From the NCBI GenBank assembly GCA_964057225.1, contig OZ059895.1, forward strand, positions 6,634,001 through 6,698,000: a DNA stretch of 64,000 nt, written 5' to 3'. Below the pieces are notes generated by a model, which saw nothing but the letters and a program-made list of their open reading frames with translations, was not told where the DNA came from and made no database searches. Made by a program: the position numbers and the translations under genes. This stretch comes from Auanema rhodensis. Its lineage: Eukaryota > Animalia > Nematoda. Shown piece by piece: positions 372 through 39,512 of this stretch (position 1 is the first letter of the stretch; each line of letters begins with the position of its first letter).

Positions 372-1895
372 ATGGAGCCTAATAGCGGAGATGTTAGTAT
401 GGGAGGCGAACATTGTAATCCCCACACCGGGAATTCTTCTCAGACCGAGATTAAAGTAGAGGTGAGCTTGTCATGTGATAAGTTAATATGCAATTGATTA
501 TTATTAATTGCAGAAAGTCAATCACAGTTGGACTGTTAAAAACTTTTCACATTGCTATCAGGAATATCTTGAGGTTTTGATTTCTTAATATTAGTCATTT
601 CCACATGAAGAATCTTAGAATTTCGTGTATCTTACTCGCGGAGAAGAGCAGTTAACATGGTCTATAAAAATATATCCTAAAGGAAATGGAGAGAATAATA
701 AGGATTTTGTTTTCCTATGTTTGAACCGAGTGGTAATGCTTCTTCTTAGTTAGCTATTGCATTTGTTTACATTTAGGTAAATAATAATAATAGTGGCAAA
801 TCGACGAAAATCGGATTTAAGTCTCGCTTCATGCTTCGTACAGCCGAACTAAAAGAAATTGAGGTAACCTCTGCTTTTTCAAATATTTTATTTTGATAAC
901 ATTAATTTTTCATTTAGATGAGAATACATCCTAATCCTTCACATTCCGACTATGTTTCATACATTAAACGAGACGTCCTTTTCCCCCAAATATTGCCTCG
1001 TGATATGATTATTGTGAATGTTGAAATTGATGTAGCTGTAGAAACGATCACAACTACACACGAGCCAATATTGGTAAGATAAAAAAGCATTTTATTCTCT
1101 CAATCATATGGTTTCAGCCCAATTCTAACTGTGAACAGCAATTAGTTGAAGATTACCAAAGACTGTTCCGTGAAGACTTATTAACAGATTTTACTATCAG
1201 AATTGGCGGTCGGGATATTCGAACACATCGGGCAATTCTGGCAGCCAGGTTTTTCCATTTCATAAAGCATTTACAATGTTCAAGTTTTAGATCTCCGGTC
1301 TTTGGCGCTATGCTAATGCATGAGGACACAAATGAAACAAAAACGGTTTGATATATAAGTTATTATGTAGTTCTCAATTGTGGGCTTCAGGGAATATTGG
1401 AAATTAGTGATTTGGATTACGATGTTGTTTATGAAATGGTTTATTATATTTATACTGGACGCTGTCAGCGTGAAATATCTGATATTGCTGGCGACCTTTT
1501 GGTTGCTGCCGATAAGTATCGGCTCGAAGAATTAAAGGTTGGTTTTTTTTTGCCGTGACAAGCTATTTCCTCTTATTTTCAGAGTCACTGTGAAAAACAT
1601 TTAATTGAAAATTTATCGACAGATAGCGTATGCCATCTTTTAGTCTTAGGCGATGTATATGGAGCCCCTCGATTAAGGAATCGTGCTGTACAAGTATGTA
1701 TTGATATTTAAACTTTTACTTATACTTATCTCATTATAGTTGATCCTTTCACGCCCCAAGACGGTAACTAATACTCAAGGGTGGGATGAAATTCTTAAAT
1801 CACATCCTTCACTTGTAACTGACATTGTTAATAACTTCGAAAAGGCTCAGACTGGATGCGGGGAGTCAAGCCAAACTCAAACCCAACCTCAATAA
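372..1895 (+). CDS. mel-26: MEL-26 MATH-BTB CUL-3 substrate adaptor (multi-exon)
   Basis: Spliced translation MEPNSGD..SSQTEIKVE|KVNHSWTVKNFSHCYQEYLE|NFVYLTRGEEQLTWSIKIYPKGNGENNKDFVFLCLNRV..RIHPNPSHSDYVSYIKRDVLFPQILPRDMIIVNVEIDVAVET (MATH), then BTB (RTHRAILAARSPVF..LLVAADKYRLEELK). Near-identical to C. elegans MEL-26 as recalled. GT-AG introns; TAA at 1893-1895. Confidence 0.93.
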
Positions 1896-2829
1896 TGAGG
1901 ATCTGTATTTGCAAATGTGGAAATCAATTAGCTGAGCTTTTTGTTTGAATAACATACGCTGCTTTATATATCGTTCTTCGGACTCAGTCAGTGTATCAGT
2001 CCATATATTATGGGTATTGTAAAGTTTGTATCCTTTCCTTAATTGTTTACTGTATGCTTAATGAGGGTGTCTTACTTTCTACAATATTTTTTATTACATC
2101 TAATCCAAAATTCCAAGTTACAAGCCTTTCCTTCTCTCAACGTTCATAATTTGTATATTGCCGAACCAACTTGATCATAAATGAAAATTTAAGATAAATT
2201 GATTATATTGTGGTCGATTAATTGTTTTATTAAATCATAATATTGAAAATAAATGTATCCTGCCTCATAGACCATCAATTCATAGGACTCAATGGTATCG
2301 TTGTCGGTAGGTATTATCCTATCGCATCTTTTCCCTTCTGTACTCCGACATGTATGACAGAGCAAGTACACATAGATGCTAACCAGAGGAATTGAACCGG
2401 TGACGTTCCGGTAACACGGGGAGCCTACGCATTTAACCATGTACTCCACATTTGTGGTATTTAATGGGACCTTCTGACTAAATCGATCAGCATTACATGC
2501 AATGTTCTGATAATTATAAGTAGCATAAGCTCTGCGCGTTCATTCAGACATGAAGAATGACCTCGTTGCAATCAATTGTAAAATATATTGGGAAGTAAAC
2601 GACTGTCTGTTTTGCTTTTCATGTATACAACTTGTTTTTTTCCTTAGTTACAATAGTTACAAAAGGCTTGATGGATTCATCATTAAAATTATTATGATGT
2701 ATCTGTATAATGAGCATCTGAACAAAGAGGGATACAAGTGCTGCAGTGAAAAACAGATATTTAAATATCAAGAGAATTCGGATATGATCAAAATATGACC
2801 AAGCGTTTTGTTCAGTTAGTCAACGGAAC

Positions 2830-31900: not shown

Positions 31901-32179
31901 AACATCTGCTATATGAATAATTATTCAAATACAATCTACATATATTTATAGATTTTCAGCGATTAAAGCTCTTTTAACCCTTTTTCTTGTTAAATATTAA
32001 AAAAAATATTCATTTAAACTAAAAATAGCTGTATTAATAAGAAAGAAAGTATTACACAAAAAGAAAGAAAAAAATATTTTCTCAATGTATTCACATGATC
32101 TCACATTGACATGTGCCTGATATTTATATTCAAAAATTAACCGGAAATTACTAAAAATCGATTAATTTGCACTTAACTA

Positions 32180-32267
32180 TTCCCACAATACGACTTCCGG
32201 TCTACAGTATAAGGTTGATCTATGAGAAATCTAGGATTGCGCCCTCAACTCATAGTTAACGTGGGAA
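32180..32267. promoter_or_regulatory. Cluster of three LAG-1/CSL consensus sites (YRTGRGAA)
   Basis: ttcccaca at 32180-87 (TGTGGGAA on minus), TATGAGAA at 32221-28 and CGTGGGAA at 32260-67, all 265-350 bp upstream of the ATG at 32532. Confidence 0.7.
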
Positions 32268-32531
32268 AATTGGGCGTGGTCGAACGATATTTCATAAAAA
32301 TCAATTGAGAACGATTTCTTTAATGTGATCGGATATTATTACAAATTTGTCATTTAATGTTATCTGTTCACAGTTTTTATTTCTGAAAATTTGAATATAA
32401 TAATAATAAAATAGAATAATTATTATTATTATTGTAATTAAATTTTTAATTTTTCTTTTATTTTTTTAATTTTTTTTAAAGTTGTTATACATACTATTTA
32501 TGTTAACGTTTTTTCAGGAAAAAAGTTAGAA

Positions 32532-33477
32532 ATGTGCGACGAACCATTTATTAGCGGCTTTGACCGTATTGGCAAGAATGTAAGAAAAGTTATTCAAATA
32601 CTTCTATGTTTGAAATTTTTAGTGGATTGATGATCATTATACTTGGAAGAAGGAACCATCCAAACAACTGCTGCAAATTAAACCAGATTACTCGATGAAA
32701 ATTCAGAAGAAATGTGATATGAAGTATGGCAATCGAATGGATTTGACTTTAGGAAATGATCAAGTGGTGAGAAAAAATGGGTTTTTTCTAATTTATAGTT
32801 ATTTGTATTTTAGAAAATCGCGAAAAGTGTTGAAAATATGAGTACAGAAGACGTTTTCTCTGCAACAGATTGTTCATTCGATTCCTGTGAGATTAGTCTG
32901 AATTCCGATCATAGCATCAGCCCCGAGGTATATTGGCTATAAATTCCAATTATCTATTACTTGTCTTTAGATTAGTCATGAGCATATACCCAACATTTTC
33001 AAGTTAAATTCCCAAGCTGTACCTACTTCATTGAATTCTTCTAGCTGCGGCTTTAGAACATATTTGAGCAAGGGACAATCCAGAAGAAAGGTAATTTTGA
33101 CATTTCATTTTCTCAAATGATTTAATGGTTTTCAGTTCTGTTTCTATTGTTATGACATGGAATATCGTAATTGTGTTTTACGTAATGAAGGTGTACCTAC
33201 CGTTAATCAAGCTGGCATATGGAAATCTCATACTACATATGATTCCAAAGGAAGACTCACGTTAGTAATATAAGTCTTTGGATTTGAATATATAAATTAT
33301 TTCAGATGTCCTCTTCTTCATTTCTTTCAACGTTCGCCATCTGATATCTACAATATTACACGTGCAACTCGTTTAGATCAAAACTGTTCTGCTGCAACTA
33401 GCTGCTCTGCAGCTGCTAACTGTTTTGCCGGTCGAGTCCTCGATCGTCGCGAGAGTAAAAACCGTTTCAAATACTAG
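32532..33477 (+). CDS. Single Nanos-type CCHC zinc-finger protein, LST-1-like
   Basis: Six exons: MCDEPFISGFDRIGKN|WIDDHYTWKKEPSKQLLQIKP..|..|..GQSRRK|FCFYCYDMEYRNCVLRNEGVPTVNQAGIWKSHTTYDSKGRLT|CPLL..RFKY*. One nematode-style Nanos finger with a long insert, no second finger, and an N-terminal KxxL motif. Confidence 0.75.
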
Positions 33478-34104
33478 ATCCCAAAACTTTTTCATCAAAA
33501 TCTTGAATATCACCCTCCTTCAAACTTGGTCATCATTCAATTGAAACACAATCTCTGTTTTATTCCATTTTTATTAGTTTTATTAGGGTTTGAACTATCT
33601 GATTCTCTTACCTATATAACGATCTCCTTCAGTTCCCTGCTCCGCCAATCCAAACGCAAGAAGGGAAAGATCGTTTGATTTACTTCCTCTATATCTCAAA
33701 ATTACCCTGTTCAGATTGTGTTGATCAAGCCCTTATTGCAAACAATCAAATATACCATGTTAAATTCTTATTTTTTTGAATTTCTCTATGATGTTGCCAC
33801 CCTTGTCGTTTGGCTGTTTAAACTACTTCATCCAAATATGTATTTGGCTGTGCATGCTTGCTATTCCTTTTCATGTCGATTGATTGTCTTATCCATTTGC
33901 GGAGCTGTTTGATCTGTTTTATGTCATCATGTTGGTTTTAACATTTTTCGTCATCCTTGTTCTTTGTTATCATCATTGTTATCACCTACTGGTTCGAGTA
34001 GAAATGAATTGTTGATGTTTCTGCTAAAAACTTTATTTTAATAAATAAAATTATATATATTCACGTGCTTTTTGATTATGATCTTTATTTGATCTTGTGT
34101 ACCA

Positions 34105-34177
34105 GCCCGGTTAGCTCAGTCGGTAGAGCACCAGACTCTTAATCTGGCTGTCGCGGGTTCGAGCCCCGCATCGGGCT
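34105..34177 (+). tRNA. tRNA-Lys (CTT)
   Basis: GCCCGGTTAGCTCAGTCGGTAGAGCACCAGACT-CTT-AATCTGG..GGTTCGAGCCC..CGGGCT; full cloverleaf followed by a T-run. Confidence 0.97.
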
Positions 34178-35069
34178 TTGAATTTTTATGAAAAAAATTT
34201 CGGGAAGAACGCAATAAAAGAAAGTTAACAATAAATTTACTGAAAAAAATGTTTTTGAATTATGAACACTGATTTTGAATATCAAATAACATCTGATTTG
34301 AGATTCTCATTCAACTTGAAACTGTTTAACATGTCCCGTAAATGATAATGTAAATATTTCAAATAACTTATCCATGGTTGAACAGAGTACTGTTTTTTGA
34401 AGTCTGATGTGAAAATAAAGCTCATATGTATTTATCATAAATATTTATTAATGAACATTGCCTTTAACTCCTCGGTAGCATTCCCAGTATTTGAAGGTAC
34501 GCAGGGATTTCATTAACTAACTATAGTTTACTAACTTTTTGTAAAGTCTATTTGGGGTTACCCGATTAGACCATCAGAGAAAAAAGATTATTTTCTCGGA
34601 ACGATGGATTTGTTATTTGAAGTGTTAAACCAATTTCAAATGATTCTGTAGTTTCTCATATCATATGTTGTCAACGCCAATTTTTTTATTAAAACCTATA
34701 CAATATACGGCGAAGGTATCTACTTGCTCTCAGTATCCTTTTTAATATATCTTTTCACTCAATGTGATAGCATACGGTTTAACGTTTATGCATATTTTTT
34801 GGATAGCCTGTCCGGGGTACACCGGATGGGTGATATGATGGAAAATTGTTAGCTTTTCTTAGCTTCAATAAATTGGAAATTAGATATTTCTTATTTTTAT
34901 CTTACTAATTGTGAAATCTTATATTATTAATTTGTATAAAAGTTAGAACAATCATTTCCACTTTTTAAAATTACGTTATAAAAAATTCATAATTGATTCA
35001 AATGTTTTTCGAAATGATTTAGAGGTGTAATAGCATAACATAATATCCTAACAAAACCTCGGAATCGTG

Positions 35070-35141
35070 TCCTCGGTAGTATAGTGGTGAGTATCCGCGT
35101 CTGTCACATGCGAGACCCGGGTTCAATTCCCGGCCGGGGAG
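35070..35141 (+). tRNA. tRNA-Asp (GTC)
   Basis: TCCTCGGTAGTATAGTGGTGAGTATCCGCGTCT-GTC-ACATGCG..GGTTCAATTCCCGGCCGGGGAG, followed by a T-run. Confidence 0.97.

Positions 35142-36334: not shown

Positions 36335-39512
<3,178 letters not shown>

Follow-up and report, generated by a model that had tools for sequence, protein, structure and literature searches.

A probable LST-1 family member with a single Nanos-like half-finger in Auanema, a nematode genus outside Caenorhabditis

Does LST-1, the protein that links Notch signalling to PUF proteins in Caenorhabditis elegans, occur outside the genus in which it was found? The protein was described as 'not recognizable beyond Caenorhabditids' (Shin et al., 2017), and among the papers searched none was found in which lst-1 or sygl-1 is named alongside Auanema, Oscheius or Pristionchus. 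The question is raised by a locus of Auanema rhodensis, a species of a genus of Rhabditidae that is distinct from Caenorhabditis. The locus lies in a stretch of 64,000 nucleotides (nt), hereafter the window, which corresponds to positions 6634001-6698000 of contig OZ059895.1 (here C3; C4 to C7 are other contigs) in an assembly of 180,911,798 bases and 112 contigs. A 2026 preprint gives the germline assembly of A. rhodense APS4 as 180.9 Mb, with 61% eliminated as tandem-repeat blocks. An initial annotation of the window had proposed a probable lst-1 orthologue with 'intact Notch and PUF logic'. The analysis described here indicates that positions 32532-33477 probably encode a member of the LST-1 family, in a rhabditid outside Caenorhabditis, and that this gene is one of two LST-1-like paralogues in the genome.

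What does the locus encode? The following gene model (window coordinates) was constructed in nematode DNA that is rich in AT and has short GT..AG introns:

32532..33477, plus strand: coding sequence of the LST-1-like gene, six exons, 240 amino acids (aa), stop codon TAG at 33475-33477
32532-32579, 32623-32766, 32814-32927, 32971-33090, 33136-33260 and 33306-33477, plus strand: the six exons of this model
32518..32531, plus strand: short 5' leader of 14 nt, as read from the sequence, between the ATG and a TTTTCAG acceptor whose last base is 32517

All introns of the window gene are GT..AG introns of 43-47 nt, and the TTTTCAG acceptor at 32517/32518 is probably its trans-splice site. The orthologue from Auanema sp. 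JU1783 (CAI4227309.1, 252 aa), which was annotated independently, has an identical six-exon layout on its own locus, with exon lengths of 54/141/114/117/125/208 compared with 48/144/114/120/125/172 in the window gene. It sits downstream of a tropomodulin gene, and the window gene has a matching neighbourhood. The two proteins were found to be 67% identical overall in a pairwise alignment. Synonymous sites are saturated between the two genes (proportion of synonymous differences, pS, 0.83), and the corresponding nonsynonymous value (pN) was 0.19 for aa 1-64, 0.13 for aa 65-140, 0.15 for the zinc finger and 0.43 for the C-terminal tail. The comparison between the two species shows that the predicted gene encodes a conserved, selectively constrained protein of 240 aa. 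The gene also appears to be transcribed. In four runs of one 2019 study, which are of transcriptome-like size (18-21 million letters of contigs), a share of 0.55 of the sampled 31-mers of 32100-34060 was present. The share expected for spliced mRNA with its untranslated region (UTR) is 0.51-0.59, as against 1.0 for genomic DNA, 0.78 for unspliced RNA and 0.28 for the coding sequence alone. Since the observed value falls within the first of these ranges, it points indirectly to expression as a spliced mRNA whose UTR ends between about 33950 and 34060.

The protein has one zinc finger:

33139..33330, plus strand: single Nanos-like CCHC finger (C144, C147, H174 and C185) with PLLHFFQ after it; intron 5 (33261-33305) cuts the finger inside the codon preceding the last Cys

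The spacing of this finger, C144-x2-C147-x26-H174-x10-C185, was compared with that of C. elegans LST-1 (T22A3.3), a germline stem-cell regulator that is a target of GLP-1/Notch and a partner of FBF. The sequence of C. elegans LST-1L (328 aa), as printed in a supplement (Haupt et al., 2019), contains C260-x2-C263-x26-H290-x10-C301 followed by PRLWFAQ. The two C-terminal half-fingers thus share the same x2/x26/x10 spacing, and each is followed by CP-x-L-x-F-x-Q. In a gap-free comparison by eye on the machine-read supplement, with the numbering offset by 116 throughout, 19 of 50 positions were identical; the numbering of the supplement agrees with the published K32, L35, C260 and C263. The identical residues are C144, Y146, C147, C155, P163, G169, W171, H174, T175, Y177, D178, G181, R182, T184, C185, P186, L188, F190 and Q192.

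When the genome was searched with exon 5 of the window gene, a weak match at a distance of 10.5 Mb on contig C3 led to a paralogue:

C3:17212719-17215838 (about 17.21 Mb; locus L004), minus strand: LST-1-like paralogue of 201 aa and six exons, from the genome search and a gene model
L004:2220-2243, 1977-2093, 1831-1932 (plus a split codon), 1694-1780, 1498-1647 and 1328-1447: the exons of this paralogue

The finger of the paralogue has the same x26/x10 spacing as that of the window protein and an intron at the same position and in the same phase inside the finger. Overall, the two proteins share only 23% identity.

Could the window gene simply be a Nanos paralogue, of the nos-3 type or another, whose second CCHC finger was lost by truncation in an event independent of LST-1? 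The only Pfam match of the protein is a weak one to zf-nanos (PF05741), and features such as H-x10-C-P-x-L are general among Nanos proteins. The window finger shares with Nanos proteins, including C. elegans NOS-1/2/3, the CxxC pair, the aromatic residue three positions before the His, the H-x10-C spacing and the CP-x-L sequence. The match was sub-threshold, with 15.9-19.4 bits for the window finger and the JU1783 orthologue (16 bits for window exon 5 and 16-19 for the unsplit orthologue) against a cut-off of 27. Because it is limited to positions 1-25 or 1-32 of the 54 in the profile, the window finger represents the first half-finger alone, and no second CxxC...H...C was found after C185 in the window protein, unlike in the two-finger proteins that define PF05741. 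A bona fide two-finger Nanos gene was found elsewhere in the genome:

C5:13692874-13695984 (about 13.694 Mb), minus strand: two-finger Nanos gene

In Nanos fingers, including that of this Auanema Nanos (C-TY-C), the loop from the CxxC pair to the His has 12 residues, whereas it has 26 in the window protein, exactly as in C. elegans LST-1 and the Auanema paralogue. The intron of the Auanema Nanos gene lies just after the first His, unlike the intron in the LST-1-like fingers. Since Nanos fingers have the x12 loop, the 14 additional residues and the roughly ten of the 19 identities that fall outside the Nanos consensus are specific to LST-1. Taken with the N-terminal KQLLQ at the LST-1 position, these features make descent from a truncated Nanos gene extremely unlikely. 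A scan of the genome with the zf-nanos profile missed the window gene and returned one EGF-like match, which was discarded as a false positive.

Membership of the LST-1 family is further indicated by the N-terminal part of the protein:

32662..32673, plus strand: KQLL at aa 30-33, candidate PUF-interacting motif A (PIM-A), identified from its sequence context

Residues 28-37 of the window protein read PSKQLLQIKP, and the JU1783 orthologue is identical there. In C. elegans LST-1, KQLL at aa 32-35 of PKQLLQLRSEIKP is PIM-A, in the context PKQLLQL(RSE)IKP (sequence from Haupt et al., 2019, supplement). Both proteins therefore have KQLLQ followed by IKP at the same distance, about 30 residues, from the N-terminus. 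The only other KxxL sequence of the window protein is KGRL, which lies inside the finger. Short linear motifs of this kind are also known from CPB-1 and GLD-3, whose KTxL/KxxL motifs dock at the R7-R8 loop of FBF through their last Leu; these are unrelated proteins (CPEB and Bicaudal-C), and only the docking principle is common. The middle part is Ser-rich and probably disordered, and in this it may resemble C. elegans LST-1. Ser and Thr make up 28% of residues 65-140, and an AlphaFold single-sequence model of CAI4227309.1 had a predicted local distance difference test (pLDDT) score below 50 over residues 1-127, within a model that was poor as a whole (mean pLDDT 33). The initial annotation had described one C-terminal Nanos-like finger, a KQLL motif and a low-complexity N-terminal part. 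The first two were recovered as stated, whereas the third applies to aa 65-140 and does not extend to aa 1-64, which have ordinary complexity (entropy 4.0 bits) and are well conserved. The protein is placed in the LST-1 family because of the x26 spacing, the 19 identities in 50 positions and the PIM-A context at the same N-terminal position.

Is the promoter that of a Notch target? In the following features, the promoter alignments and motif scans end at 32437 or mask 32438-32485:

32139..32147, plus strand: conserved block AACCGGAAA with the ETS-like core CCGGAA, exact and collinear in the JU1783 upstream region
32180..32186, minus strand: canonical LAG-1/CSL site TTCCCAC (GTGGGAA), species-specific; the aligned JU1783 position reads TTCACAC
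32193..32202, plus strand: conserved block ACTTCCGGTC (reverse complement GACCGGAAGT, ETS-like), 10/10 identical and collinear in JU1783
32222..32228, plus strand: relaxed LAG-1-type site ATGAGAA, which fits RTGRGAA only and is not conserved in the JU1783 alignment
32260..32279, plus strand: composite element of the canonical CSL site CGTGGGAA, 4 nt and the GC box GGGCGTGG, with blocks and spacing identical in JU1783

Three LAG-1-type sites had been reported within 90 bp upstream of the gene, and these were indeed found within 88 bp, two of them canonical and one relaxed. Sequences fitting RTGRGAA occur at 0.83 per kb in the window. GTGGGAA itself occurs seven times in the 64 kb, and the copies at 32180 and 32261 are the only pair within 100 bp; for a pre-specified 400-bp promoter, the expected probability of at least two canonical sites would be about 0.001. 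A canonical GTGGGAA upstream of the gene is a feature shared with C. elegans lst-1. In comparison with JU1783, the four exact blocks AACCGGAAA, ACTTCCGGTC, CGTGGGAA and GGGCGTGG were collinear (shuffle P <1/300), and no other block of the promoter is conserved. Because the CSL-type site CGTGGGAA, joined to the GC box, is kept in JU1783 despite saturated neutral divergence, and the other two LAG-1-type sites are not, this one site is under constraint.

The composite element was also found to be rare. The pattern TGGGAA-N4-GGGCGKG occurs four times in the 181-Mb genome, compared with one occurrence of a reversed control, and two of the four copies lie in the promoters of the two LST-1-like paralogues (window 32262-32278 and C3:17215056-17215072). 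In the paralogue, the element is 111 nt upstream of the ATG and has its CSL core as CTGGGAA; TTCCGG occurs twice, further upstream. These data support a shared, presumably ancient cis-element with a CSL-type core in both promoters, and a CSL gene is present in the Auanema genome. The remaining copies of the pattern are at C7:8859056 and C7:12635999 (reverse strand). One of these two precedes a GC-rich leader and an open reading frame for a membrane protein of no known family, and the other, with tyrosinase-like exons about 1.7 kb away, has another GTGGGAA 60 nt upstream. Both may mark additional targets of the same factor pair.

The two conserved CCGGAA blocks (32139-32147 and 32193-32202) are in opposite orientation. 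The sequence GACCGGAAGT, which is the second block on the other strand, is close to the ETS consensus. The lst genes were first found in cross-talk between EGFR and LIN-12, and, as a speculation, an ETS input next to the CSL site would be reminiscent of it.

How does the window gene relate to lst-1 when a second LST-1-like gene exists? Because this paralogue lies on the same contig and has the composite element in its promoter as well, there is no simple one-to-one orthology, and the window gene is a co-orthologue of lst-1. The proposed lst-1 orthology accordingly stands as membership of the family, on spacing, identities and PIM-A, and not as simple orthology. The presence of a second finger-bearing paralogue is itself a difference from C. 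elegans LST-1. Which of the two Auanema genes would do the work of LST-1 can be asked of their motifs. The paralogue has KxxL motifs at aa 26-29 (KEVL, within SKEVLLLKP at aa 25-33), 60-63 (KQEL) and 76-79 (KELL); PIMs have been published at 32/80 for LST-1 and at 39/77 for SYGL-1. Because of its KxxL motifs at aa 26 and 76, the paralogue fits a two-PIM geometry better than the window gene, in which neither KxxL nor an obvious Leu motif is seen near aa 76-85. The paralogue also contains the 8-mer GRVTCPRL of C. elegans LST-1. Both genes could thus belong to the LST-1 family with the paralogue, with its two to three KxxL motifs, as the germline stem-cell regulator, and the window gene could have another or a partial role, such as that of a somatic lateral-signal target or a modulator. 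However, the window protein is nearer to C. elegans LST-1 at PIM-A, where KQLLQ is identical in the window protein and not in the paralogue, and in the finger, where it has 19 identities compared with 16 and keeps the third Cys. Its CSL site is canonical (CGTGGGAA), compared with CTGGGAA in the paralogue, and either PIM alone is sufficient for self-renewal in C. elegans. Such a division of roles is considered possible, although on the unlikely side.

The pair invites comparison with lst-1 and sygl-1. SYGL-1, the redundant partner of LST-1, is small and largely disordered, with PIMs near aa 39 and 77. Its gene shares a linkage group with lst-1 (the semicolon is omitted in the notation of double mutants), as the two Auanema paralogues share one contig. 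SYGL-1 differs in having no zinc finger, and it was set beside the Auanema genes by its published features. One conceivable history starts from a rhabditid ancestor in which two finger-bearing LST-1-like genes shared a chromosome and were each driven by the same element, a CSL site plus a GC box; Auanema would have kept both, and SYGL-1 would be what the second copy became in Caenorhabditis after losing its finger. We hold this history to be doubtful, with a low probability; if true, it would explain the redundancy of LST-1 and SYGL-1, their shared PIM geometry (about aa 30-39 and 76-80) and their location on the same linkage group.

Does the genome provide a partner for the motif, and does the transcript itself carry PUF-type sites? 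Two PUF genes were found:

C6: classical Pumilio-like PUF gene
C4:14663190-14666898 (14.664-14.666 Mb), minus strand: second PUF gene, of FBF/PUF-3 type

Over the repeat-7 exon, the second protein and FBF-2 are 80% identical (35/44), a stretch that takes in EIFDGYIPHP, with which the R7-R8 loop begins. This loop of FBF is the surface where the terminal Leu of the LST-1 motifs docks. Because an FBF-2-like docking surface is encoded in the genome, the product of the C4 gene is a plausible partner for the window protein, and an FBF-type PUF is thus a further component that Auanema has in common with C. elegans. A long 3' UTR with UGU-type motifs is common to the window gene and C. elegans lst-1 as well:

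33478..34062, plus strand: 3' UTR of about 585 nt, with AATAAA at 34040 and 34044
33556..33563, plus strand: UGUUUUAU, degenerate PUF-type match to UGUDHHAU, not conserved in JU1783
33758..33765, plus strand: UGUUAAAU, degenerate PUF-type match to UGUDHHAU, not conserved in JU1783
33905..33935, plus strand: CTGTTTGATCTGTTTTATGTCATCATGTTGG, the sole conserved island of the 3' UTR, containing the third UGUDHHAU match at 33915

Matches to UGUDHHAU had been listed at 33556, 33758 and 33915 in a UTR of about 570 nt, and all three were located. None of the three fits UGURHHAUA. Outside 33905-33935, the UTR is unalignable with that of JU1783. Within the island, JU1783 keeps CTGTTT and TCATCATGT and has lost the exact UGUDHHAU (UGUUUCGU). 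The island is a candidate regulatory element on grounds of this sequence conservation.

How firmly does the assignment to LST-1 stand? The following observations weigh against it: 1) the link to C. elegans LST-1 was drawn from a comparison made by eye on a machine-read sequence; 2) in a search of 1.84 billion representatives with exon 5, the only real relative at E <= 0.001 was the JU1783 orthologue, with no link to LST-1; 3) word searches with CAI4227309.1, whole or as the finger region, returned only CAI4227309.1 itself at E <= 10; 4) searches of PDB chains with window exons 2 and 5, CAI4227309.1 and paralogue exons 2 and 3 returned no LST-1 peptide or Nanos chain, although LST-1 peptides were expected there; 5) a counterpart of PIM-B (KLHLTY, KLHL-x-Y, at aa 80-85 of C. 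elegans LST-1) is absent from the window protein; 6) the C. elegans intron that splits KQLL is not at that place in the window gene; 7) outside PIM-A and the finger, likeness to C. elegans LST-1 is negligible, being limited to scraps such as S-x-ENM in the disordered middle; 8) JU1783 keeps just one of the three LAG-1-type sites, and C. elegans lst-1 was selected in a screen for a cluster of four or more LAG-1 sites, of which the window promoter, with its one conserved and, in A. rhodensis, two canonical sites, falls short; and 9) the three UGUDHHAU matches compare with 0.85 expected (shuffle P = 0.057). The window protein is also shorter than C. elegans LST-1 (240 vs 328 aa). Three bacterial repeat proteins returned by the exon-5 search were set aside as chance matches, as they match only a KSTT-YD-RG repeat.

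The absence of PIM-B does not exclude membership of the LST-1 family, since either C. elegans PIM alone suffices for self-renewal in vivo. In the light of the single conserved CSL site, the missing PIM-B and the weak UTR motifs, the phrase 'intact Notch and PUF logic' was too strong, and the caution that had been attached to the UTR motifs, as degenerate and perhaps due to chance, was borne out by their P value and by their being mostly unconserved. Could the whole likeness, in the short motif, the small Cys/His finger and the TGGGAA site, then be convergence or chance in a lineage-specific gene? KxxL motifs are common, as are single TGGGAA sites, the proteins do not align in their disordered parts, and no significant database link to LST-1 was obtained. 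On the other hand, three independent features coincide. The ungapped identity of 38% over 50 residues compares with about three identities in 50 expected at a random identity of about 6%, with identical finger spacing in addition, and an identical pentapeptide stands at the same distance from the N-terminus. Convergence or chance is therefore regarded as very unlikely. We conclude that the window gene is best filed as a new LST-1 family member in a genus where the family was called unrecognisable. The supposition that the species lies outside Caenorhabditis proved right, the only database relative being from Auanema sp. JU1783; because the species is an Auanema, the gene extends LST-1 beyond Caenorhabditis, as had been anticipated.

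By analogy with C. elegans, a mechanism can be proposed for the window gene as an LST-1 family member. The gene would be switched on by Notch, acting through CSL at the conserved CGTGGGAA. Its product would dock via Leu33 of KQLL on the FBF-like PUF and, in germline stem cells, would contribute to the repression of differentiation mRNAs. Autoregulation or feedback, and not the self-renewal activity, would be the task of the finger. Each of these steps, namely Notch/CSL control, PUF docking and finger feedback, is only partly supported by the sequence. Because it has one PIM instead of two, the window protein could bind only one PUF molecule.

Downstream of the poly(A) signal of the window gene, the following features were observed:

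34104-34178, plus strand: tRNA-Lys(CTT), directly downstream of the poly(A) signal
35070-35141, plus strand: tRNA-Asp(GTC), likewise downstream of the poly(A) signal
37041-39499, minus strand: open frames that contain a kinase motif and a long stretch rich in Arg, Ser, Lys and Glu, and that by eye resemble a PRP4-type splicing kinase gene

What would an LST-1 relative in Auanema mean for the family? It would place the origin of the PUF-docking motif, of the half-finger and of at least one CSL site before that of Caenorhabditis. The residues that the two lineages have in common, KQLLQ..IKP, the third Cys, G-x-W-x-x-H-T-x-Y-D and CP-x-L-x-F-x-Q, would be those under long-term constraint. Auanema, for which CRISPR and RNA interference are reported (PMC6345965), would become a second genetically tractable genus for the link from Notch through LST-1 to PUF proteins. 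Finally, the pair of paralogues and the rare promoter element that they share would offer handles on the origin of the redundant lst-1/sygl-1 pair.

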